A DNA stretch of 64,000 nucleotides, taken from contig NW_005434646.1 of the NCBI RefSeq assembly GCF_000315625.1, forward strand, positions 397,626 to 461,625, written 5' to 3'. The notes below the pieces were generated by a model, which worked only from the letters and a program-made list of their open reading frames with translations, did not search any database and had not been told where the DNA came from. This document shows, piece by piece, positions 1 through 58,346 of the stretch. How positions within the stretch are numbered: position 1 is the first letter of the stretch; each line of letters opens with the position of its first letter. The stretch is from Guillardia theta CCMP2712. Its lineage: Eukaryota; Protista; Cryptophyta. A program made the position numbers and the translations under genes.

Positions 1-1717
1 TCTATCTCTGCCCAGTACCCCCGCAAATGTCGCGCTCCACTTTCATCTTTCACCTCCTGCAGATCCCATAGTGAACAGAGCTAAACTTGAAAGTAGGCGA
101 CTCACTTCAAGAAGCTTGACTGAATCTTTCAGCGTTGAACGCAGCTCGTTGCCCTCTTGGCTGCCATTCCTTGAATCCTCAGGAAGCTTGGTAAAAGACC
201 GCCTCGCACAATCGCATTCAGCGGATAAAATCTGGCAAGCTGTCACACGTGCAAATCTGGATAGGAGAATACATGTACCTCGACAAGCTGAAGAGGGGAG
301 TAGTGCTTGATCTCGTTGGTTGCTTTTTGAAACAAGACTTTCATCTCCTTCATGTCAAGACCATCCTCCTCCGAGCATATCAAAAGCGAACACCAAAGCT
401 CCACTGAGAATGGACAGTTGCGAACTGAGCGCCTGTAAACATCGGCAACTTTTATCCCTCCAGCTCCACTAGGCTGAGATCGAACGAATTCTGCATAAGA
501 ATTCCAAAGGGTAGGGACCAGACAGCAGGTTGAGAGCGCTCGTTCATACGCACAGATAATCTTCGTGACATCTCCGCTTTCGGATTCGCTTTCAATACAT
601 TCCTGCATTAGATCTTAGGTCCAATCATCGAGAAGAGACTTATGCGCGGAACCTGCCAGATCTCGAGCACATTGAGCGACGAGTCCTTCTGTCGACGAGC
701 TTCGGCATCTTTCAGTTCGCGTTCACTTGCCTTCATCATGGCTTCTTCTACTTCAGCCTGACACTGTCTCACAAGCACATCTCCTTAATTCAGTCAGCAC
801 CTTCTTCTTTTCAACAATGCTCTTGTCAGTTTCCCATGATTCATACGAGATCCACGTTTCAGCGAGTCCCTTCACTTGAGCTTTGATCTACCAGGAGCTG
901 TCAGCTGCTGGCACACCAACAAATGAAAACAACCTCTCTGTCAAAGCACTGACGGATCAAAGCAATCTGTGTCTGTTTTTCTGTGGAGGACCCCTGCATG
1001 TTTTCGAGAACTTTAATTTCGAAGTTTCTCTGCAGTTCCCACAGCTTCGAGCCCTCCAACAGGTCATTGCCCATTATCGTCAGGGATCTGCACGATAGTA
1101 AAATCTCAACCATATTGTTGGACAGCATCGATTACCTTTGCATGGTTTCCCTCACGCGGTTCAGATATTCCCTCTGCTTCGCGCCCTCAAGGTCGAAGTA
1201 CAGCTTTTGAATATACTTCACATACTCTGCCCATACTTTGGTAGTTGGATAATCCGATAATGCTCGCTCGAACAAGGATATAATCTTCTCTTGGTCTTCT
1301 TCTGAGCAAGCAAGACGTATCTCATCGCCTATCCATTCCAACCAAAGATCTAGCATAATCATTTCTTGAGGAACGAAGTGGAGGGAACGGCTACAACTTA
1401 CCCTCGGCCAGAGGAAACGAGATAGAAAACTGTTCTCGCGTCTTTTCTAGTTGTTTCCTCATGGATTTCTTCTTGTAGATTCGAAGAAGCTGGTGGAAGG
1501 CTTCGTAATCCCTCTTTCCGCACGCTTCTAGTCTTCCCTCGAGCTGAGCAATCAACTCCTCCCCTCCATCCTCCATGTCGTCACTATCATCATCAGAGGA
1601 GGATTCCATACTCTCATCACCATCTTCCTCCTCTTCCTCTTCCTCTTCCTCTTCCTCTCCCTCTTCCTCTTCCTCCATCGCCGCCTCGTGATTGGCGTCC
1701 TTCATTTCCTGGGTCAT
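1..1717 (-). CDS. SART3: SART3/Prp24-like HAT-repeat U4/U6 snRNP recycling factor, multi-exon, 3' end beyond window
   Basis: Minus-strand exons with HAT-repeat signatures (LWLEWIGDEIRL, SLFERALSDYPTTKVWAEY, YERALSTCCLVPTLWNSY, YRRSVRNCPFSVELW) after an acidic N-terminus; short GT-AG introns separate the ORF pieces. Confidence 0.8.
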
Positions 1718-5081: not shown

Positions 5082-6399
5082 GCTCCTGCTGAGAACTTTC
5101 CGCTCTCCGAGCGGAGGATCGGAATTGCATGCTGCCAGCAGTTTGTCATATCTAATGTATGTCGTGGTATGTCGGTATAAACAATGTTTCCCCGACTCAA
5201 GTTTCTCTCCATCAGATTTACTTCACAACAATGAAGGCATCATGTTAATCAGCTCTACTCCGGTGGCCCCCACAATCCACTTTCAGCCTCACCTGACGGC
5301 CTGCCGAAAGGAGTCAGTCCGAGGAGCGTCTGCAGTATCAATGAGGGTCTGGCAAGGAACTTACTGCATGTCAGGGTAGAGCTTGCACCTACGAGCGACA
5401 ATTCAGATATGAGAATTGAAGGAGCTGTTTGCTCACATGGGCTCGAGGGGCTTCATGACAGGCTGCTCAGGATTAGTAGGATCGTAGACAAGGCCTGAGC
5501 CGATGGGGTTGAAAGTTGCTTCGAAGTTGGGAAGGGAGTTGCAGGTGTCCTGTGACGGAGAAGTTTGATCAGTGATAACATCAAAAAACTTGATTCAATT
5601 TTTTTGTCTCAACCATTCTCTTCAATCACGCAGCCATCACTTGGAAAGTGGAACAGAGACAAGTACACCAACTCGTGCTCCCTCTCCATCACTCTTGGCC
5701 AACTCTCTTTCCAGCCCTCTATCAGTCTGCATCCCTCCCCTTACTTGCGCACAAACCTCCCTCTCTGCACTGCAAAGTTCTTTCTTGCGTGATCCCTTGC
5801 CTTCTAACTGCCTTCCTACATTGTCTATTTCTGGTTCTCTAGCTGAACACTTCCTGCCTTGAAGTATTTTAATGCGTTCAAGATGTGATACCACAGGGAA
5901 ACAACAGTATACTGTCACTATTCCGTCACCTTGTCATGTACCTCCCTCCCTGCCTCCAAGTTGCAGGCCGTGAATCTCCGTGCTCTGTGTATCGCAGCCC
6001 GATGGCCCTTGCGTGTTGTCTCTGACATAGACTCGTTGTATCTTTCACTTTTGTTTGTTTCAATACATCGCTCTTGCATCTATCTATGTCTTTCTTTTGT
6101 CTCTTTCTATCTCTACCCTTGCATCTTTCTATCTATCTCTCTACGCTCTATCGATCCCTATCCCTTGTCGCTCATTCACACTGTCATATTGATCTCTACC
6201 TCCTATCTCTTTCTATCTCTTTTGTTTGTTGTCTCTTATCTCTTTCTGTCTCCTTCTCTTATAATATCTCTTTCACATGCTTCTTTCTTCCTCTTTTCTC
6301 TTCTCCTCCTCCCCTCCAACTCATACCTGCGTCCACAACAGCTTCGTCAAGCGCATGGCTCTTGGTAATGCCGTTACCGCCGTTACCAAATGAGAAGTC

Positions 6400-6930
6400 G
6401 TTGACCGGCAGTGAGCCGCCCACTGGGCCAGTCAGATGTCCGGGACCGGCCGCCCGGCCGGCCGCCGGGCGGGCCCGCCGTCAGTCACGCCGTGCCCAGC
6501 CCGGCCGGGCAGGCAGCCGCGGCCCGGCTCCCGGTTCCTCGCCGTCCGGGGGCCGCGCCGGTCCTCATGACTCAGTCTGTGGCCGGGCAGCACCGCCGCC
6601 GGGCGGCGCGGCGCGGCGGCCGGCCGGCCCAGTCACCGTTCCGCCGCCGGGCCCGGCCCGGGCCCGACGGTGACTGGCACCCCGTTCGACCCGGTGACCC
6701 GGCGGCGGCTGGGCCCCCGGGCGCCGGGACGGGCCGGGCGGCGATCCGACCGTGACTGGCGGCCCGGCTCACAGTGAGTCACGGTCCGATCCGATCTGCC
6801 TGAGTGTGTCACGTGGATGACACTAAAGTGTCAGTCATCAGAGTTAGGCCCTTCGTTTCCTCTGCCTCGTAGTCGTCAGCCGCTAGTCCGGAGTGGGCCG
6901 TGGAACTGTGACTCGGAGGCCCCGGCAGCA
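6400..6930. other. GC-rich island with clustered GTGAC/GTCAC and TGACTCA-like motifs
   Basis: Abrupt CCGG/GGCC-rich segment containing catgactcag, cagtgagtcacg, cggtgactgg; similar islands at ~15980-16450 and ~55390-55560. Confidence 0.6.
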
Positions 6931-8141
6931 CGTCGACGGTCATAAACTGCGATCCTCCGACTCGGTGCAAAACAATTTTCGAAAGTGTCACTGAAAAAAT
7001 GAAATCTTAGAATCATATTCTTACCACAGTTTTGTAAATTGTCACATGCTTTACTATGTGTACAAAAGTAGGACAAATTCTCTCTACCTGGTCGGGGGAT
7101 TGAAGAGGCGTACGACTGTGTGAGCCTGTGAGCACGAGATGCCTTGATATCTCGGAGGGGGTCCTCTAGCCTCCTGCTTTCAGGGCATTACCCAAAATTA
7201 AGCGGTGTAGTTCACAAATTTGGTTGGTTTGAGATGATTATTTCAAATTTGATAATGAAAGTTTCGATCATGGGCCAAACCGTAAACATGGCCACGTTGC
7301 AGGGCATCCCATTAGGGAAGGGTACTCAAATTTCGGTAAGGGCATCCAAATTTGTAATAAATTACCTGAATTTTAGTGTTGATTTTCAGTTTTACAAATT
7401 TTGGTTGTGATTTTGTGTGATTTTCCAACTAATGATACCCCTGACGGAACCATTTCTTTGGCCAAGTCCTTCAGTCCTTCCTCCGCAAAGACCCCTGGGG
7501 GTAGTCACATGGGGGTAGTCAGGAGGCCTAGATCATTCTCTGGTAGGGGTCCACATGGAATGACTATCTTAGACCGGGTAGTTTTAGAGGAAAATATACG
7601 GGATCAGACCAGTGGTGGGTAGTTACAATCAGGGGTAGAGGTAGATTGGTCATGAGACATCCACGTGGGGTAGGGTAGTACCGCAATTTGTGGACGGGCT
7701 GATATGAGAAGGGGGGTAGGGGTAGGACAAGCGAACGTCCAAAGGATGCAGAGGGATTTTTGCAAGGGATCAGAAGAGAACGAAGTGGAGGAAAGTCGAA
7801 AGAGAGAGATGAGAACAGGAGCGAGAGTGAAGATGATTACAGAAGATTTTATCTCGTGTTCAAGTCATAACTCGCGAGGATACAGCTTGATGAAATACGG
7901 CATGGCACGAGTATCCATGAAAACATGATTAGAAAGGGGGCAGGAGTTGCTAAAAAAGTGAAGTTCGGAGAGATTGAAGATGACTATTGTAGACAATATC
8001 ATTATGGTCCCATTATGCATGTGAAGGTCCACGCGGAATTCATGTCTTGGTTGTGACCAGATGCTTTCTGATTGTGTTCGATTCCACGCTTGGATTTATT
8101 TCTTTTGATTCTCTGCCTTGTATGACCTCACGATTGATAGA

Positions 8142-45970: not shown

Positions 45971-48900
45971 ATGTTCGGAAGGAGCACTTCATCAAGGTTC
46001 TCCGAGGCCAGGAGCTACACCCCTGGCCCTGGTGAGTATGATTCGAACAAGTCCCTCTCCTCCACCAAGAAAGGCTTCAGCATGGGAGTCGGCGAGAGGA
46101 AACTCCATCGTCTGAGCGAGTTCTGCCATCTTGGTCCTGGCACGTACGCCATTAGCAGTGAAAACTCGCTCCCTGAACACAGAGCTTTGCCTGCCTCCTC
46201 GGATGTGGAATCTGCTATCAAAAGGCTGACCGGAGCATACAACAAGTACTGCGGCGGCTGCAACCCAAAGAACCCAGCGTCGAACGCAACGCGGGAAGAG
46301 ATCCTAACCATGGTCTCCAAGTTGTTCTCTGAGTGCGTGTCAGCTGTTGGGGAGGTCTCAAGAGTCAAGGGAGAGGTCGATCAACTTCAGGGGAGAGTGC
46401 ACGATGAGACGAACTTGGCGATCAAGCCCTCCAAGTCATCAGGTAACGCCGGGCTGCCTGCGGTGTGGAAGAAGATCGAGCCCCTTCAGAAGGCCTTGGG
46501 AAACGCTGGTTCCGAGCTGGAGAAGAAAGTCTTGAAGGCTAACTCGATGCTGACTTGCGTTGCGGAGGAGTTCCCAGCACTTGCATGCCTGCTGTCGGAG
46601 GATCCCAGGCTCTCGCAGCTTCATGCGAGGGTAGAGACGCTAGAGTCAGAGCTCGAGGAAGCAAACCTGCAGGTGGAAACCTTGTCCTCCCAGCTGAAAC
46701 AGTTCTGCGAAGAGAAGGATGCGGTGGAGGGGATGCTGTTGGGGGTGAATCGTGAGAAGATCAAGATTGCGCAGAGGAACATGAGCCTGGAATCCATCAT
46801 CCAGAAGCAGAAGACCTTCATTCAAGACCTTGAAAGCTCCCTTGACGAAGCTCGAGCTGGCCACGAACAATTCCTGGCGTCCCTGCACCAACTGTCAGCC
46901 CGGGCAGACGACGATGCATCCCTGCACGATGAGCTGCTGGAGATGACTTGCAGATGCGAGAGGCTGATGGCCTGCGAGGAGAGCTCGTTCCAGCAGATCG
47001 CCGACTTGCAGAGGGAGCTGACTTCCTCTCTGCTCGATGCTGAGCAGGCAGCACAGGGATATCAGGTGAGGACGACTAATCTCGGTCAATGTTCCTCACT
47101 CCGTCTCAGGCTGAGATTGGGGAGATGGGGGCAAAGCATTCCGCCCTCCTGCACGAGATTTCAGGTCTAACAGAGGAGCTGATCGAGTCAGGAAGAGCCT
47201 GTCAGAAGCTTGAGGGCCAAGTGACCCTGTTGAGATCCCGGAACAACAAGCTCAAGTCCTGTTTGCACATGGCCGACCACTTCCTCCAGGTCTCTCCGCC
47301 GTGTCCTCCCATAGCCTCATCCTCCAACTGCCCTCCTTGCACCCATCTAGTTGACCGTTGACCGTCTCTCTTCACCATTGACTTTCATGTGGGAGGTGGA
47401 CAGCTGACCATTGTCGAGCAGTCTCAGGTAGCGGAGGAGCTAAAGGAAATGGAGGACTTCGATGAGCTGAGGGACGAGGATGGCACATCGAGCCTGATGG
47501 ACAAGCTTGAGTTTGACATCTTTGAGAGAGCTTGTCAAACGATCCATGACCTGATGAAGGAGTGCGACGAGTGTCGGGAGGAGTTGACGGCAGCTCAAGT
47601 CATCAACAGGGAGGTTGAGATTGAGAAGTTTGCGATGGTTGAGAGCTATGAAGCATCTTTGATGTCGTACCAGAGCGAAATTAACACCTTGATGTCTGAC
47701 AGAGATGAGGTGAGAATACAACGACCCTTGACAGCGATTGACTCGCTAGACAGATGATCGACAGGTTGCAGCAACTGCTTGCTCACAAGGCAGAAATGGA
47801 AGAGCGAAACAGAACTCTCCAAGAGTGGTTGGAGGCAAAGGAAGCTGAGATTAAAACCAGCAACAAAAAGCTCTCTGAGATTTGCAATCTGTGCGCCGAC
47901 ACCCAGTCGAGCTTTGATCAGTTGCAAAAGACCGTCAAGCTCAAAATGGACAAGGTCCGCATCTGAATCAGCTTTAGGCAAACAACTGACTTGCTTCGAA
48001 CAGGAGATCAGTGATGTCGTGGCAAGGTATCATGACCGTGTGGAGACATGTTCAGCACAACAGAAAGAAATTTCAATGCTGAACACCTCCTTGGACCGAA
48101 CCATTACAGACCTACAGATGAAACATGAGGAGAACGAAACAAACAAGCGAACCATTCAGCAAAATGAAGAAGCGATGCAGCATCTCAAGGCAGAAATTGA
48201 CGAAAAAACCGCAACAAACAATCAAACCCAAATCGAGCTGGCCCAGACCAAGGACGTCGTCGCCGCCCGAGAGGAGGAGATCGCCCAGCTTGGAGGCGAG
48301 CTGGCCCAGACCAAGGACGTCGTCGCCGCCCGAGAGGAGGAGATCGCCCAGCTCGGAGGCGAGCTGGCCCAGACCAAGGACGTCGTCGCCGCCCGAGAGG
48401 AGGAGATCGCCCAGCTCGGAGGCGAGCTGGCCCAGACCAAGGACGTCGTCGCCGCCCGAGAGGAGGAGATCGCCCAGCTTGGAGGCGAGCTGGCCCAGAC
48501 CAAGGACGTCGTCGCCGCCCGAGAGGAGGAGATCGCCCAGCTCGGAGGCGAGCTGGCCCAGACCAAGGACGTCGTCGCCGCCCGAGAGGAGGAGATCGCC
48601 CAGCTTGGAGGCGAGCTGGCCCAGACCAAGGACGTCGTCGCCGCCCGAGAGGAGGAGATCGCCCAGCTTGGAGGCGAGCTGGCCCAGACCAAGGACGTCG
48701 TCGCCGCCCGAGAGGAGGAGATCGCCCAGCTCGGAGGCGAGCTGGCCCAGACCAAGGACGTCGTCGCCGCCCGAGAGGAGGAGATCGCCCAGCTTCAAGG
48801 CTCGCTGTCTTGCATGGAGCAGAAGCTGCAGGAACTTTCACAGAGCCTCTCCCGACTTGATCATGAGCTGAAGGAAAGAGACCAAATTATCACAGAAGTC

Positions 48901-50427
48901 GAGGAGCATTTGAAGAGGGCCTGGGAGGACTCCTTCGCTCAATCACAGGCTGTGCAGGGTTCGTGCGGTCTGCTAATGGATGAAGTGAATGAGATGAGGC
49001 AAGCGATCTTGTTGACCTCTGACCTTCTTGCCAACGAGCTTGCGGCCCTTGACAACGACTTGACGTGGAAGACAGCAGAGTGCGACGACGTGAGGAAGAC
49101 GCTACTTGCGAGGGAGGCGGAGCTGACGAGAGGGATGGAGGAGATGAGGGCGAGGCTGGAGGACGAGCTGGCAGGCAGAGCGGCCGACCTGCAGGAAGCC
49201 CACATCCAGCTTGCCATGCTGCAAGAGACTGTGAAGGAGAAGGAAGTCGAGAGGAGGCAGCTGGAGCAGCAGGTGGAGGAGTCGCACTCGGCAGTTGTCA
49301 AGATGTACGCAGACACAGACATGCAGCTCAAGGCGCTGGGAAGCTCGTCCTGCGGGCCCCCATCGTCCAACTCGAGGCTTGCGGCTCTGCAGGTCTGTAC
49401 AGGGGAGAAGACCAGATTAGGGGGGGAGGAGGGGAGGAGGGGAGGGGATACGGAGTGACGGCCGAGAGGGTCCATGGCTGACGCGGATAGCAGGCTGAGC
49501 TGGAGTCCTCAATGATGGAGAGGCAGGAGTGCCTGCGGGCAATGCAAGTGCTGCGGGAGAAAGAGCAGCAGGCGACAGAGAAGAGCTTCCAGATGAAGGA
49601 GGAGCTAGAAAAGAACCTGCAGGAGCGAGCGTCGATGACGTCGAGGATGGAGCAGTTGGAGAAGGAGAATGCAAAGCTCACGCAGGAGAACATTCAGGCA
49701 TGGAGAGGGGAGAAGAGGGAGCGAGAGGAGAGGGGGGGGGGGGAAGAGGAGAGGAGAGGAGAGAGGGAGGGAGAGACCTTTGGGTGCTGGCTGACTGGCA
49801 GCAGCTTGTAGGCCATCAGAACTTGAAGCAGAAGATTCAGATGCACGCCAAGGTGAAGGAGGAGAACAACCAGCTGAAGAAGGAGAAGGCAGCATTCGAG
49901 AAGATCGTCGCCCAGCAGAAGAAGGTGATCGAGAGGATCACGCAAGCTGCGGGAGGGAACGAGCAAGACAAGGAGAACTGCCTCCTCTTCAAGATCGACC
50001 AGGAGGAGCAGCTACAGGTGAGCTGGCGGCTGCAGCCGACGAGCTGCTGAAGTCTGCGAGCAGGAGAGCCTGAGGGAGGCGGAGAACGAGAGCAGAGCCC
50101 ACCGCACCCACTTGCTCACTCTGCTGCACCAGCTGCACGGGATGAAGGTGGAAGAGGCGCAGGAGGACATCCTGTCGGAGCTGCTGCAGGACACAAGGAA
50201 GCTCGGAGGGAGGAAGGACTGGAGCCAACTGATGAACGCTGCTGGTCGACTGCTGGAGCAGATCAGCCAGCGGCAGCAGCAGCAGCAGCGGGAGATCGAG
50301 GGAGCGAACCTGAAGATCAAGCTGGTGAGGCCCAGCTGCGGTTGTTAGCAGTTGGAGTTTGACTTTTTTCTTTTGGCAGCTGGAGCAGGGGGCCCGAATC
50401 CTCAAGGCAAACCTGGGGTCGAGCTGA
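45971..50427 (+). CDS. HMMR: HMMR/RHAMM-like spindle coiled-coil protein, multi-exon
   Basis: N-terminal SRFSE...TPGPGEYD (HMMR_N-like) and C-terminal LVGHQNLKQKIQMHAKVKEENNQLK (HMMR/KIF15 C-terminal motif); no kinesin motor; long coiled coil. Confidence 0.72.
48235..48795 (+). repeat. 63-bp coding tandem repeat, ~9 copies (ELAQTKDVVAAREEEIAQLGG)
   Basis: Directly visible; copies differ only at the synonymous CTT/CTC codon. Confidence 0.97.
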
Positions 50428-50567
50428 GAAGGAAATCATTTGAATGACTTTGACAAACTAACTACCCCACTATTCAATTAAACTTAAGAGACACCTTTAG
50501 TCATGCTAACTGACATCGTCAGTCGATCCGAATGACATCGTCAGTCCTGATGATTGACATACTTCTT

Positions 50568-53500
50568 TCAGCCTGGCTCCATAAAGGGATCGAGGGGAAC
50601 GTTCGGGTTGGCCCCGGTGACGAACTCTATAAGGTCGACGGCAGCGTCCCTGACCGGCTTGGAGATCTTGGGCTCTAGCTGGGGATCCTCCAGGAACTTT
50701 CCGAAGTTTTCGACGATGAAGTCGCAGAGGTTGGGGAAGCGAGCGTCTGAGAAGATAAGGCGCTTGAAGAAGACAATAAGGGCCTGTTCAACGTGTCAAA
50801 CTTGACATGAGGGAGGGGGAGAGGGGGACGGGGACCATGTTCTCGGAGACATCGTGTCGGAGAGGGAAGGAGTCGAAGAACAACTTGATCTAGACTGTGT
50901 GTCAGTCTCTTGCCCCTCAGAAAACTTTCTTCCGCACCGCCTGGTCGCCTTTTTCCACATTAACGAAGAAGAACCTTGAGCAGAGCAATCTGGACAGACT
51001 TGCTACCTGGTTGCTGATGTGAGTAGAGAGGGAGGGGATGAGTTTACCACAAGAATGACGAGGAGATGGTTGGGGGAAAGTAAGGAATGTAGGATGAAAG
51101 GTAGGAATAGGAAGGGAGCGGCGGAGGAGGGGATGCAGGTGGGAATTCAAAGATCGAGAGGGAGATTAACTCACAATGTTGTCTCGAGCGAAGCCGCTGA
51201 TTTCCTTTACGTCGGTGAGCTTGAGAAGAAGATCAAATATTCCATAGCAAGCCCCGATGGTTGTTTTCTCAGACTGCGAGTTGTTGTCAGTGCAGCTGCC
51301 TCCTCCCTCCTCCCTCCTCCCTCCTCCCTCCTCCCTCCTCCCTCCTCCCTCCTCCCTCCTCCTTCTCCTCCTCCTCGTCCCTTCTCTCTCTCCTCCTACG
51401 TGAGTTGCGATGATTCCACAGCAGGCAGCAGCGTTCTGCACGAGTCGCATGTCGACGTCATCCCCCTTTCCACTCGAAAACTTTGACAGGATGCTTGTCA
51501 GGCTGGAGTTGAGCACAGGAATCATGTAGTAGGAGTATCGGTCGAGGGGGAGACTGCTCTTCGACACAGCTATGTCGGTGAAGACAATTCCAACCGCTCC
51601 TAGCGCCAACCTCTGCATCCACATGGGTTGGTGAGACGATGACCACTCAAGGAAATTCGGGAAAACTTCGTCAAAGAAGTTACGAAAGAGTTTTGAGTTC
51701 GAGGTGCCTTCCCGCATTTCAAGCTCCTCCTTGGTCAACCGATGCTCCTTCCAGAGCTTTGAGATCATGCAGACGGCGTGGAGCAGACTGGAGAAGAGAT
51801 ACTCGACGTTGTCGAACTCCAAAGCGATGGAAGCCTCGATGTTGTGGTCCATGATTTGCTTCATCACTTCCGTGACCTTCTCGAGATAATCCTTCATGAA
51901 GTTCCATCGCACCATCTCAAAGATCCCGACGAGCGTTCGACAAGCGATACCCGTCAGTTCTCCTTCGCTGCTCTTCCGCATGATTTGCAGCACAGAGTGT
52001 ATAGCCTCGTCTGCCAAGTTCTCTGAGACGGCGTGGAGGGCAGGAGGCTGCCTTTCATCAAGCGAGGGACGAGACCAGTAAGTCACCGCGAAGGTGACGA
52101 GGGTCTGGACGGTCCACAGACACTCCTTGCAGATCTGAAGGTTGCGAATTTGGAGCATGCTGATGATGGATTTGAAGATGCCCCTGAGGTGCGGCGAGAA
52201 GCTTTCTCCCAGGTTCTCAGCTAACACCTGCAGCTCGTGGTCAGTTGGGGCAGAAAACCTTCTGAGCTGCCCTACCCTGCACAGCTTCACAGCGTTCGCC
52301 TTCTCCTCGTTGGATTTCTCGCCAGTGTCCTTCGCTCGCTGAACCACCTTGTTCAGCTCCGCCTGGGAACAGATAAACTCGCCGAGTCTTCACGGTCAGG
52401 TGTACCTGATCGACATCATCAGCCTTCCCCTGGTAGATATAGTCTTCCAGGGTCTGGGAAGGATCCAGGCAAGCTTTCAACGGTGGAATGACCTGCACCA
52501 ACGTCGTCAAGTCTCTTTCCTGTCATCTGTCGCATCGATGAACATCGCCATCTTACAATGTCCAGGAAGGGCTGGAACGCCTGCTGGAGGACGGAGATCA
52601 CATCAGCAAGCGACTCCAGCGCTGCTTCTCTTAGGATCGTTTCTTTTTCGGGGCCCATGAACGCCATCAGGATCCTCTCCATGCAGAGGAAGGAGTACTC
52701 CTTGAGCGTCTTCGAGCTGCTCCGAGTGAGGAACTTCCCGAGGCTCTTCACGCATTCCGCACGGATCAACATGTCGTCAAGTTCATCCTCCTTGCCTTGC
52801 GAGTGATTTGCCAGCTTGTCATAAAGATTTCCAACTGCCGTGATAGACTTCTCCATCGTCTCGTCGGCCAGCTCGAAGGAGGCAATGATGCAGCAGAGGC
52901 ACTTGAGCGCTCGATCGTGCAGAAGCAACTTGTCGGAGGCGAACTGCTCGAACAAGAACGTGAGGACTTTGGGAACGTAGTCGACCAGGGATGGACAAGA
53001 AGCTTTGGCTAGGCTCTCTATAAACTCGAGAAGGAGGCTGCAGGTTTTCCCGTGGGTCTCTATGTGCAGATTTGAGACAACAAACATGAGAATGTTTTCG
53101 TCCAGGTCCGACCGGATCTCTTCCGGAAATGAGTTGACAAATGAGCAGAACGTCTGGAAGACATAGCCACTGATTTCTTTGGCGTCTATCAAGTGTCTGT
53201 TTGATAAAATGTTCAAAGTTCGACTAACCTGCGGCCGTAACGTCAAATTACGTAGGGAAGTGGAATATACATCAGACCAAATTCGCTTCTCTCAAGCCAT
53301 CAGCCGATGATTTCCCGTAACAAAAACTTTCAATGAGCATGATCCGAAGAAGCATTGATTTCATCTTGTCCGTCTCTTTCTCCCACTGCTCGTCCTCTTC
53401 GCCTTGGACGTATCTGAAAGCCAGCAGTGTCGCATTCTTCGAGGACTTTGAGTCCATCAGCTTTCCTAAGAGCATCTTATACTCCGGGATTAATGTTGAG

Positions 53501-55283
53501 TTGTCAGATCTGTATGTTTCCAAAGTGGAGCTTCCTTCCTCAAACTCTCCGTCGTCATCAAACGCATCTATGTTTCCCTCGTGGTCGGTGGACAACACGT
53601 CACAGATTTGTGCTACCTCCAAATCCTTGAAAACAGCCTCGAGCTGCCTTACCACCCTTGCAAGAATGTTTCCAACCAGCTTTCTTTCCTCAACAGCGTC
53701 TCCTCGTAGAGATGCGATCTCAGCCAACAAGAAGATCGCCTTCTTCCTCGCGGTCGAGCTCACCTCAGGAGCTTCTGAAGCCCTGAAGGCCAACTCAATC
53801 TGGACAGCAAAGGCTGGTCAACGAATCGAATGATCATCCACAAAACGTTACGATGTCATCAAGCCGTGCAATGTCAAATAGAGCCCAGCAGTACGTGAAC
53901 ACTTCGACGTAGAAATCAACGCAAGAGAGAATCATTTTCGAATCTTTCTCGTGGACCTGCGATCGTTACCATTCAGCTGGTGAGAGATCAACATTCAGAT
54001 CTTCTACCGCTCTTGAAAAGGTCTTATGGGACATTTCCAGCATGGAGTACTTGAGATTATATTGCTGTCCTCTAACGGATCGCGGGAGATTGGATTCAAC
54101 ATCAGCGGTTCCACAGCAACAATAAGGCACACCTTGTCATGAGATTGAGGGCCAGCTTGATGCCCTTTTTCCTTACAAGGTTGTGATACTGAGGGCTTCA
54201 AACGTGACAACCAGAAGCATCAGGAGTCGATACAACTCACGTGTGACATGGATTCTATGGCAGCCTCAGAGAGCTGGTCAACGTAACCTCCCATCTCATC
54301 GGCCCCAGCGTCAAAGATATCCGAAATTCTGCAATATCAGGTGGTTCATGATTCGTGCAACGCAGACAAGACACTTGGAATACAGTTCCAGCGCAATGCT
54401 CCGCAAGGGTAACTGCTCATGTTTTGACAATTCGAACAACTGCAAAGCTGTGAGATCGACGAAGTATTCTGATAAATCAACCGTGAATTTCTCACCTTTT
54501 TCATCGTGGAATGGAAAAATGTGAACGATGACGAGACGCCAGCCGATTCACCTATCAAAGCTGCCAACTGCAATGGAGGATTCAATTCAAATTTCTCTCG
54601 AAAAACAATCCGGACCGCTCTGCTGAGCTTCAAAGACGCTAGCGTTGAATCTTGAAAGAGTGCAGTATATACTTCTTCTTGGAAATTCTCTTTCTGTTTG
54701 TCATCTAGAACAGGCCAGAACTCTTGGATCCTTCTCCTGAGGATCTGAAAAAGCTCCCCTCAGCGAACCATAGAGCATTGGAACAGCTCTCAATGCTACT
54801 CACTACTGCAGCTAGCTGCCTGATGTCAACACTGAGCTTGTTGGTCACTGCGCAGTTGAGCAGGTTTTGGACAAATTTCGGTTGTTTCAGGTTGAGCTCA
54901 ATCTTGCTTTCTGCTTCCTCAATCAACTTGTTGTCTCCGGCCAAGATGTCTTCCAGCACCGCTAGGATGTACTCCCTGCTACAGGCATCGTTGTGCGGAC
55001 CATTTCCACCTCGCAACCGAAACTGCAACCACATCATGTTCGTTTCTCCTTGATGGAAATGAATCTTGCAAGACCTCACAAACGCAAGTGCACTGGTGTC
55101 GCCCCTTGAAGGGAAAGAGAAGTCCAGTCGGAGAGTAAGGGTGCATGGCAGGAGGAGCAAGAGCAAGAAAATCAGCAAAGCGTTTCGTTGCCTCCGGAAT
55201 CCCCGAGAGGGCGTGGAGGAAGAAGAGAGTATGCGATGAGAGCAGGGACCAGCAGATGTGCATGGAGCTCCTACGAAGCTCAT
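50568..55283 (-). CDS. Importin-beta family HEAT-repeat protein (importin-4-like) with N-terminal signal peptide and FRLRGG leader, multi-exon
   Basis: IBN_N-like LEDILAGDNKLIEEAESKI...DIRQLAAV; HEAT exons (HDRALKCLCCI, IRAECVKSLG, LREAALESLADV, LVQNAAACCGII, ARDNI). Confidence 0.7.
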
Positions 55284-55389
55284 GGCTGCGCCTGCCTTTT
55301 ATCCAGATACCATTGCGACTCGTAAAAAACGCAATTCATCGCCCTCTTGCATCTGCACCTTTGTCGGCCAGTTTGTCGGCCTTTTGAAA

Positions 55390-55560
55390 GTTGTCGGGCC
55401 GGGCTCCGACTCGGAGCCCGCCAGGCGGCTCGGAGGCTCCAGCACTGAGGGCTCCCGGAGTCCAGGCTCGGTCGGGTTCACTCATGCCACCAGGCTCCGA
55501 GGCTCACTGCCAGGCTGAGTCAGTCAATGAGTCACTGGATGTGTCGGGGGAAGCCGGGAG
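55390..55560. other. GC-rich island with TGAGTCA motifs at the left edge of the duplicated block
   Basis: ctgagtcagtcaatgagtcactg plus repeated ggctcc/ggctcg. Confidence 0.5.
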
Positions 55561-55921
55561 GAAGTCGGGAGGTAAAACTACAAAGTCAGGTCACGAAACC
55601 GGATTGTTACCCGATTTTTAACTTAACTTTGAACCGGATTGTTACCCGATAGTATGCGTCTTGCAATTACTCAGGGCTCAGAATTGCTTCCGGGATCGTC
55701 CAGACCGTTACGCCATGTCATTTTCCGTTCCACGGCTAAGTCATTTTCCGTTCTCAACGGTCGACCACTTGGCGTATACTCTGTTCTCATCAGGTGAAGG
55801 ACAAGCTAGAGTGAGGGATAACAAACATCGCGCAGCCGCTGGGTGCTTGAAAGACTGCCAGGCTGTGATCACAGACTCTGAGACATTGATAGCGTGAGAC
55901 AGCCTGAGGGAAACAGAAGCA

Positions 55922-56095
55922 ATGGCCGCCTTTCTTATATCCGACGTCTTCATCCGGTTTGCTGGAGGGCTGGTGGTTTTCATGCTCATGATGCCTATCA
56001 TCGCAAAGGTTATTCACGTGATACGAGCTCAAGTCAGGAAAGCACTGTTCGCTATGAAAGAAGACGAGGATAGCGAAGACGAAAGCGAAGCATGA
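55922..56095 (+). CDS. Putative 57-aa single-TM microprotein with acidic tail (second copy at 61606-61779)
   Basis: MAAFLISDVFIRFAGGLVVFMLMMPIIAKVIHVIRAQVRKALFAMKEDEDSEDESEA*, below the ORF-track cutoff. Confidence 0.35.
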   Translation: MAAFLISDVFIRFAGGLVVFMLMMPIIAKVIHVIRAQVRKALFAMKEDEDSEDESEA

Positions 56096-58346
56096 GCAGT
56101 ATAAGCTTCAAACTCGTCCAAATGGAATCCAAAGGAAGTTGCTTGTAATGGGTGCACCATTCCAGCCTGATACTCTGAAGACTTGCACCAGCTGAAGAGA
56201 CTGATTCAAATCATTGTCTTTAGCCGATGATTGTACTGTTTCACCGTAGATTCAGAACGATTTCGCTCCTCATCTTAAAAACCCGCTGGAAGAGTTGATC
56301 AGTTACCAGCTGGACCAACGCGTCACGGCAGGGAGAAACTTGGGCACAGAGGGAGGAACTTCGGAAGGCTGCTCTGGAACAATAGACTTCGCCTGTAAGG
56401 CTCTTGTAGTCACGGCTCTTGAAAGTCACAGAAAATGAAAGTCTTCTTTGCGTATCTGTGACATCATGTAACCGATGATTTGTGTGAATTGATTTCATTA
56501 CAAACATTTGCGTACATGAAAACGTTTTACCCCCAATCATTTCGAGACAGCGATACTCGCTGATGTGAGTCACCTGCAGTTGTACTTGTCGATGAAAAAG
56601 GTTACATGGGCCTACCAACCGTTGAGCCCTCCATACCCTTGTCCATGCAGCAGCCGCATCCCTCAGCCAGCGCTCGTTGCCATACACGTTGAGCGGCGAT
56701 GGAGCTTGAGCAGGGAGAAGCTTCGGATATCGTTGGGGTTGACGTATGGTAGCCTCTTGATAGGACCTCAAGACCTACCCAAGCAGCTTCGCCCGACAAG
56801 GCTCGAAGTCAACTTTTTTCGATTTTTCGTCATGCCGATCAATGAATTGACGAGAGGCAACAGATTTCCACTCTAAAGAATCGAAGCATTTGATCAATGC
56901 TTGCAGAAACATCAAAGAATGAATTGCACAACAGTTGGATCAAGCAACGAATCGACGAGAGGAAGTAAGAAATGGTTTTGTAGCTATCCCCTAGAAGCCC
57001 ATCGGCAGCCGTCTAAGGCTCTTACTTTGTGCAGCCCGTGGCAAAGGAGAGGAGAATCCTCCGACGAGCGTTTGAAACAGAGGTTGAAGCAGAGCCTCAA
57101 GGTGAAAGTTTCGGGTCGGACCCAAATATCGATCCCCTCACCCCACGCATTCCGGGAATAACATGGGGAGAGCTCTTGTCAAAGGAAAACAGCGTCGATA
57201 GCATCTTCGAGGCAGGAGACAAGAAACTTGTGAACGAAGTTTGCGTCAGCATGATTGTGCAAGCTGACTGAAGTGAAGATCCTGCGGACGATTGCCGGAT
57301 AAAGTAATCTATGCTTGTCCTCCTTTTCAAATGAACGCAAAAAGATACCTTTGAAAGACAGGGCATGGCATTGGAAGGGAAGCCTGATGTGCCATCATCT
57401 TTGTGCGAATGAATATTTTGATTCGGAAGGATACACCAGCAGTGCGTGTGAGCAACGTAGGAAAACAGCCATTCCAACAATTTCTCAAGATGCGCTTGCT
57501 GGCAAGAAGTCATGTAGAAGGATCTAATCATGGCACATTAGAGTGATGATGATGTGTTGTTGATGATGATGAGGTGGAGGTGAAGCATTGATAGGATTTT
57601 ATAGTGCTAGCTTTACTTACTTTATTTTGAGGTATCTGAGGCAGATTCCTAGTTTAGCTAATCCTCTATACTTAAGGAAAACCGAGAAAGAATAAACTTC
57701 ACGTGCATGGTTTACGGATTGTAGATGCTGTCTGTTTCTCGAACGAATTGCCTGGGATTTCTGGTTTGGTGAAATCTGGAATGTCAAAGTTTGGGACTTT
57801 CATGAGAGATACCATGAGGGGTTCTCCAGAAAGAATCAATACTTGTGAACGGGAGAGGTCTGAGATCTGTGAGGTACAATCTTGTGTGCCAGGATCGGGG
57901 CAGACAGGTATGGACGTGGCGTGGACATAGCGCCAAAAACATTGAGAATGGATGATGTACAACAAAAACCGTTCTTGGGAAGAATGGACGATGTACAACA
58001 AAAGCCGTTCTTAGGAAGGGCAACTAATCGGGATGTCCCAGAAGAGAACGATGAATTGCGTGCGAATTGTCAAACGTTGAGTCGACTAGTACATGTTATT
58101 CGTATGGAAAATGGAACAAATTGAGCGAACCCATGAAGTACTTCCAGAGCAAATGCTGTTGGGGACTTAAGCTTGTTTGGCACAACATCAGATGGTCGTT
58201 CGTTTTGTACCGAATGAGGACGAAACTGATTGCTTCGATCTTGGCTGTAATTGGACAAAGCTTTGCCGGCGCCGGCGGTTACGCCGGGGTTGCGCCGGAT
58301 ACTGGAAATCCTCATTCTCTCTGAGGCGGACTGGGTTGAGTGCTGG

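Follow-up and report, generated by a model that had tools for sequence, protein, structure and literature searches.

The periplastid compartment of cryptophytes, the relict cytoplasm of their endosymbiont, is known to run a ubiquitin-dependent import machine, and the ER lumen is continuous with the outermost plastid membrane. Import into the stroma of cryptophyte plastids has been reported to go with an aromatic residue directly after the signal cut. Ubiquitin ends in LRLRGG, a tail that is cut by deubiquitinases; ISG15 ends in the same six residues and NEDD8 in LALRGG. Most deubiquitinases cleave a free LRGG peptide poorly when the ubiquitin body is missing. Among the karyopherins, the receptors of the importin-4/5 branch import histones H3-H4 and ribosomal proteins. 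Transit-peptide-like sequences have been described as being "somehow then removed" (PMC5756292). The canonical pore complex has been reported to be absent from nucleomorphs, and the survey of the nucleomorph pore, which was restricted to nucleoporins and left karyopherins aside, found almost none that had a signal peptide (PMC6411479). For cryptophytes, our search found no usable publication on Ran or importin encoded by the nucleomorph. It also returned no paper combining LRGG with Guillardia or the periplastid compartment, those that join LRGG with cryptophyte terms being concerned with other matters. The LRGG end of the leader considered here, for which we found no published description, is thus apparently undescribed, and the supplement of the genome paper may still list such proteins.

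The window, that is the whole stretch of 64,000 nucleotides analysed here, carries on its minus strand a predicted importin gene whose coding sequence (50568..55283) comprises 17 exons and encodes 1227 amino acids (aa), all 16 introns being of the GT..AG type. A sequence-only reading of the window had described, in the minus-strand ORF that runs from 55283, a hydrophobic signal, a linker, the motif FRLRGG (55005-55022) and an importin N-terminus, and we confirmed both the coordinates and the residues. The first ATG of this long ORF opens a long N-region rich in Ser, Pro and Arg (aa 1-34, 55182..55283), which is followed by the hydrophobic core of a signal-peptide-like segment, 17 aa without charge (aa 35-51, 55131..55181), and by a transit-peptide-like linker in the same reading frame (aa 52-89, 55017..55130). 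LRGG itself (aa 90-93, 55005..55016) comes next, and the rest of exon 1 encodes the beginning of the putative mature importin body (aa 94-160, 54804..55004), including the first half of the IBN_N domain (54804-54914); all of these features are on the minus strand.

The best 10-aa Kyte-Doolittle mean within the hydrophobic core was 3.77, and the core is followed by an end of the P-C-T-L-T type. A 34-aa N-region ahead of the core is long for a signal peptide; it contains an RRQR cluster, and over its first ten residues it is similar to the N-terminus of Hanusia (G-[AS]-P-C-[TI]-S). Judging from hydropathy and layout, the N-terminal segment can be called signal-peptide-like. With the signal cut guessed between T51 and L52, the first residue after the cut is Leu. 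Linker and LRGG together make up 42 aa, with six R+K, three D+E and a single Lys. According to the alignment ranges, LRGG lies 7-8 residues ahead of the position that corresponds to human importin-4 Met1.

To follow the transcript, we aligned RNA-type contigs (three sets) and the reads of one raw RNA run to positions 50400-56300. Fifteen GT..AG introns of the importin gene were directly visible as contig joints, and the contigs are therefore derived from RNA; the remaining intron 8 (53800-53851) was placed from a contig break at 53799 and from the reading frame. The raw run (X16) contributed six reads on the stretch. Spliced contigs from the three RNA-type runs (X1, X2 and X3) have their 5' ends at 55322, 55317 and 55306. 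They thus reach upstream of the first ATG, so that the signal-like segment is present in the mRNA. We took the interval 55306..55322 (minus strand) as the approximate transcript start, contig ends being an approximation of the start site only; further upstream, RNA depth was zero over 55325-55521. A transcript beginning downstream of the signal had been named as an outcome that would speak against the leader, and the RNA contigs, which cover the first ATG, do not bear it out. The intron 54745-54803, which interrupts the ORF as originally read, is downstream of both the leader and FRLRGG.

The first ATG of the long ORF stands in the context GCAGCC-ATG-A. Ahead of it, the 5' leader of the mRNA holds a four-codon upstream ORF (55299..55313, minus strand) that begins with an ATG at 55313 and shares the frame of the main ORF. 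Between AUG1 and Met83/84 there are two out-of-frame ATGs, which makes leaky scanning to MMWLQ unlikely. Intron 13 (51274-51399) is a GGA/GGG-rich simple repeat that reads (EEGGGRR)n in frame; 68 bases of it are missing from a relative with 97% identity (L001), and positions 51295-51384 within it were skipped as a repeat in the RNA read placement. On the plus strand, a divergent neighbour transcript (55561-56300) begins about 240 bases from the importin transcript, with splices 55591>55632 and 56189>56224 and a 57-aa ORF (55922..56095) in which a single hydrophobic helix is accompanied by an acidic tail; up to 10 mismatches to the window occur in the RNA contigs within 55561-56300. The importin gene also faces a convergent, plus-strand coiled-coil gene (48150-48800), which includes about nine tandem 63-base repeats, each encoding a nearly identical unit of 21 residues.

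Searches for the family of the protein used single exons, full-length tests used an orthologue, and the joined 1227-aa model served for frame checks. Exon 1 alone matched positions 1-37 of the IBN_N profile with 13.4-14.3 bits, below the Pfam cut-off of 21; the domain is split by intron 1, and exon 2 alone gave no match. The window's own exons produced sub-threshold Pfam matches only (the IBN_N half and TPR_IMB1), the raw ORF pieces retrieved nothing useful from the PDB, and a word search with exon 1 gave zero matches. With exon 13, the word search recovered fragments from Hanusia phi (72% identical) and from a metagenome (97% identical), and an exhaustive search of 1.84 billion representatives returned nine matches, all fragments, with the public Guillardia model not among them. 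The Hanusia phi cluster includes a protein of 1122 aa, P0030, encoded on the transcript contig L002, and a word search with this protein recovered a second Hanusia model only.

The orthologue P0030 passed the Pfam cut-offs for IBN_N (24.5 bits against 21, residues 19-83), TPR_IPO5 (28.5 against 27) and HEAT_EZ (39.3 against 27). Its top PDB sequence match was importin-4 (E=6e-7), and its Atlas neighbours were importin beta-3/IPO5 clusters at 0.97. The AF2 model of P0030 is an all-helical solenoid of about 50 helices with a mean pLDDT of 75, and its best 20 Foldseek matches were all IPO5/RanBP5, Kap121, importin-4 or Kap123, over 1118-1209 columns; the HEAT solenoid, which in the karyopherin-beta superfamily has about 19-24 repeats, was assessed on this orthologue, about 70% identical over the large exons. 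From these sequence and model comparisons, the window gene is predicted to encode a divergent karyopherin-beta of the importin-4/importin-5 (Kap123/Kap121) branch. The divergent importin proposed by the sequence-only reading thus stands, by way of the Pfam, PDB and Foldseek matches of the orthologue. Close relatives were found by sequence searches only in Guillardia, Hanusia and marine or environmental contigs. Elsewhere in the genome, a leaderless importin-4 gene (L005, G000:C15:945667-947164) shows alignment to the solved human protein starting at residue 1 of the latter, and has a stop just upstream of its first Met; the window gene is therefore an additional, leader-bearing copy.

We recovered the leader layout of the window gene in four relatives: the metagenome contig L001, the Hanusia transcript L002 and the environmental contigs L054 and L055. 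In the five-sequence alignment of the N-terminal regions, L-R-G-G was the only invariant four-residue run; the leader drifts apart from it, the linker being unconserved except at a few positions. The hydrophobic core is kept in all four relatives, at a varying distance from the motif, and is preceded there by short N-regions, in contrast to the 34 aa of Guillardia. In L001, whose protein is 97% identical, frame and core are kept and an in-frame 6-base deletion changes the motif to W-LRLRGG. Base differences between the window and L001 amount to 10.1% in the leader, 6.9% in the introns and 2.8% in the coding sequence. Since the leader differs more than the introns do, most of its positions are unconstrained; its codon changes, 7 synonymous and 10 non-synonymous, do not discriminate coding from non-coding sequence.

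In the Hanusia transcript the frame is open upstream of the importin body, and the leader runs from a classical Met-Leu-Arg-Lys plus hydrophobic core, through an L-[QR]-L-D-[LF]-S-F block and a different linker, to L-K-L-R-G-G. The block is a short conserved stretch, and the EukProt Hanusia model (P0031) independently begins within the leader. From the hydrophobic core to the start of the mature domain, Met is absent in both Hanusia and L055; in Hanusia this includes the position of MMWLQ. L054 and L055 are 23-27% identical to exon 1, and each shows, in order, Met, hydrophobic core, basic linker, LRLRGG and importin N-terminus. An abundant uncultured relative, probably a cryptophyte, carries this LRLRGG-ended importin leader. 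The distant orthologues L054 and L055/L056/L057 have a GC content of 57-59% and few or no introns in large ORFs, and one cluster among them occurs on more than 50 marine contigs.

The motif had been read as a ubiquitin-tail mimic. The tail residues do match, and they sit at leader/mature junctions; a profile search found no ubiquitin family match in exon 1 at E values up to 10. The linkers of the five sequences measure 29-66 aa, with 6-7 R+K, 0-5 D+E and exactly one Lys each. Because they are unconserved and show no ubiquitin family match, the word mimic applies to the tail only, and the linker of the window gene, on its sequence, does not correspond to a ubiquitin fold.

A survey of leaders upstream of all 15 IBN_N loci, and of one locus on contig C4 found with P0030, showed that two further karyopherin genes carry a hydrophobic N-terminus and LRGG at the same junction. 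One is exportin-5-like (L022, G000:C65:85000-91500; ORF 106..948, plus strand), matching PDB 3a6p with E=1.4e-28 and Xpo1 with 50.5 bits, both Xpo1 and IBN_N being over the cut-off; a classical signal and a 24-aa linker lead to LRLRGG, which precedes the equivalent of exportin-5 residue 1 by four residues. The other is a second IPO4/5-like gene (L023, G000:C4:79500-86800; ORF 5488..6984, minus strand; TPR_IPO5 82 bits), in which a hydrophobic N-terminus and a linker of about 75 aa lead to LHLRGG. In all three leader-bearing karyopherins, the motif ends about 3-8 residues from the canonical N-terminus. Four canonical IBN_N loci begin 23-34 residues before the domain, without a leader. For the remaining IBN_N loci with a first exon upstream, no LRGG leader was found within 1.2-2 kb, a span that does not cover farther exons. 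An internal Met soon after the motif in L023 could also yield a leaderless form.

The motif was also found well beyond the karyopherins. In the genome, 353 places match a degenerate DNA pattern for LRLRGG, and 255 match its reversed control. When the LRLRGG-type sites were taken in genome order, 17 of the first 30 were leader-like, meaning that a Met is followed by a 10-aa window with a hydropathy of at least 2.0, 25-100 aa before the motif end; the same held for 148 of 3395 control positions (4.4%), drawn at random from the open frames of the same loci. This agrees with the enrichment of RLRGG at leader/mature boundaries that the sequence-only reading required, and none of the 30 sites belonged to a ubiquitin gene. 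In an eEF1A-type gene on the minus strand (L038, G000:C3:1063784-1066800, motif at about 1500-1517), signal, linker and LRLRGG follow one another, and the eEF1A alignment (E=5.5e-23) begins with eEF1A residue 2 on the residue immediately behind LRLRGG, the motif sitting exactly where the initiator Met would be. Its sequence marks this gene as a likely periplastid elongation factor, and it provides the cleanest calibration of the leader/mature junction. LRGG recurs on unrelated genes and is therefore a general leader feature rather than special to the importin: in the sequences compared, it is a real and general leader/mature junction mark of cytosol- or nucleus-type proteins in the Guillardia genome. 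The overall interpretation first put forward, that of a host-encoded karyopherin with a distinct maturation signal, is thus supported in part: the transcribed in-frame leader, the conserved layout, the family and the recurring junction motif speak for it, but the motif is not peculiar to the importin gene.

The other components of nuclear transport were searched for as well. In the nuclear genome, a search via PF00071 yielded a single Ran gene (L065, G000:C178:10574-14128); it is leaderless, and its Met is closely preceded by a stop codon. The single importin-alpha locus and the four RanBP1-domain loci showed no LRGG leader within 1.5-2 kb, farther exons lying outside this span. Among the nuclear genome loci examined, we found no leader-bearing Ran, importin-alpha or RanBP1 gene.

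We consider it probable, with some room for doubt, that the window gene encodes a nucleus-encoded importin-4/5-type receptor with a bipartite, LRGG-ended leader, which is sent to the periplastid compartment, loses its leader at or after LRGG and serves the nucleomorph. The signal segment would take the chain into the ER lumen and would be cut near T51/L52, and the linker would carry the protein over the periplastid membrane via the ERAD-derived SELMA route. Removal of the leader would take place at LRGG or directly behind it, after which the mature importin would bind basic cargo (histones, ribosomal proteins) in the periplastid compartment and deliver it to the nucleomorph. As to its parts, the features of the leader indicate that the importin is probably sent to the periplastid compartment, and the protein is a candidate carrier for the nucleomorph. 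Because the motif abuts the native N-terminus in the alignments, it is more readily taken for a cut site than for a sorting signal alone. For the cutter, a protease of the ubiquitin type is an attractive possibility, since the compartment runs a ubiquitin-dependent import machine; this is the weakest step of the explanation. Points that weigh against the explanation are the length of the N-region, the drift of most leader positions, the lack of a ubiquitin fold ahead of a tail that most deubiquitinases would cleave poorly by itself, and, for the step into the nucleomorph, the single leaderless Ran gene, the importin-alpha and RanBP1-domain loci without such a leader in the spans examined, and the reported absence of a canonical pore. 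The broader proposal that a protease of the ubiquitin type matures the periplastid proteins of cryptophytes by cutting after LRGG, and that the nucleomorph, although it lacks a canonical pore complex, is served by a dedicated group of host-encoded karyopherins (importin-4/5-like twice and exportin-5-like), can be offered only tentatively, and we would sooner doubt it than rely on it.

LRGG could also be an uncut sorting or recognition element, either a handle for the ubiquitin machinery of SELMA or a stromal stop, with the leader removed elsewhere or kept. Its invariance and its recurrence across the genome show selection, not cleavage, and the single lysine found in every linker (5/5) would fit a role in ubiquitin-dependent translocation. 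However, a motif that adjoins eEF1A residue 2, and that lies so close to the N-terminus in three karyopherins, is placed as a cut site would be, and we regard the uncut element as doubtful. Whether the protein, once in the periplastid compartment, acts as a transport receptor is a separate matter: a HEAT-repeat chaperone or holdase for histones or ribosomal proteins, or some other periplastid role that involves no passage of the nucleomorph envelope, would agree with the near absence of nucleomorph pore proteins (PMC6411479), with the failure to find leader-bearing Ran, importin-alpha or RanBP1 genes, and with the strong divergence of the protein, whose window exons remain below Pfam cut-offs and whose exon 13 has only nine matches. 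We nevertheless think such a role unlikely, since the leader is present on no fewer than three karyopherins from different branches (two importin-4/5-like and one exportin-5-like), an exportin would be without obvious use if there were no transport, and the Ran-binding N-terminal domain appears from its sequence to be kept in the orthologue P0030.

The two further alternatives concern the leader itself. It could lead to the ER lumen, to secretion, to the plastid stroma or to a membrane anchor, and the 34-aa N-region with its RRQR cluster could act as a type II signal anchor. But the proteins with this leader (importins, exportin-5, eEF1A) are cytosolic or nuclear in kind, and we know of no role for any of them in the ER lumen or the stroma; the stroma in particular is disfavoured by the Leu, rather than an aromatic residue, that follows the likeliest signal cut, itself a guessed site. 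A destination other than the periplastid compartment is thus very unlikely. It could also be supposed that the upstream part of the ORF is untranslated and that the protein starts at Met83/84 (MMWLQ), as an ordinary host cytosolic importin. Met83 is in good context, the comparison of the window with L001 shows no purifying selection on most leader positions, and the 4-codon upstream ORF could modulate initiation. This start is largely refuted, and we give it almost no weight: the RNA contigs cover AUG1, the two out-of-frame AUGs stand in the way of Met83, Met is missing at that place in Hanusia and L055, where the open frame, the hydrophobic core and LRGG are nonetheless retained, and the genome has a leaderless importin-4 gene elsewhere.

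For the passage of proteins and RNAs across the nucleomorph envelope, which still calls for an explanation, the three leader-bearing karyopherins are named, testable candidates. The invariant LRGG at the predicted mature N-terminus is a concrete candidate site for the removal of transit-peptide-like sequences, and it could serve as a simple mark for predicting the cryptophyte periplastid and nucleomorph proteome.

Compared to the importin-4/5/Kap123/Kap121 branch, the protein has the same N-terminal IBN_N, IPO5-type repeats and full-length HEAT solenoid of about 1100 aa, but its divergence is strong, with an identity of 12-15% to solved members, and it adds a 93-aa N-terminal leader with a hydrophobic signal. 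In the order of its parts, a signal-peptide-like hydrophobic segment, then a basic, acid-poor linker, then a cytosol-type mature protein, this leader appears similar to the periplastid bipartite signals of algae with red complex plastids that use SELMA, whereas it ends in an invariant LRGG and, in Guillardia, begins with an unusually long N-region. With the precursors of ubiquitin and ubiquitin-like proteins it has in common the last four to six residues, which are identical (LRLRGG in L001, L054, L055 and other leaders), and, as in natural ubiquitin fusions, the mature partner comes directly after the motif. In those precursors a beta-grasp of about 70 aa precedes the tail; in contrast, no ubiquitin fold precedes the motif in the leaders described here.
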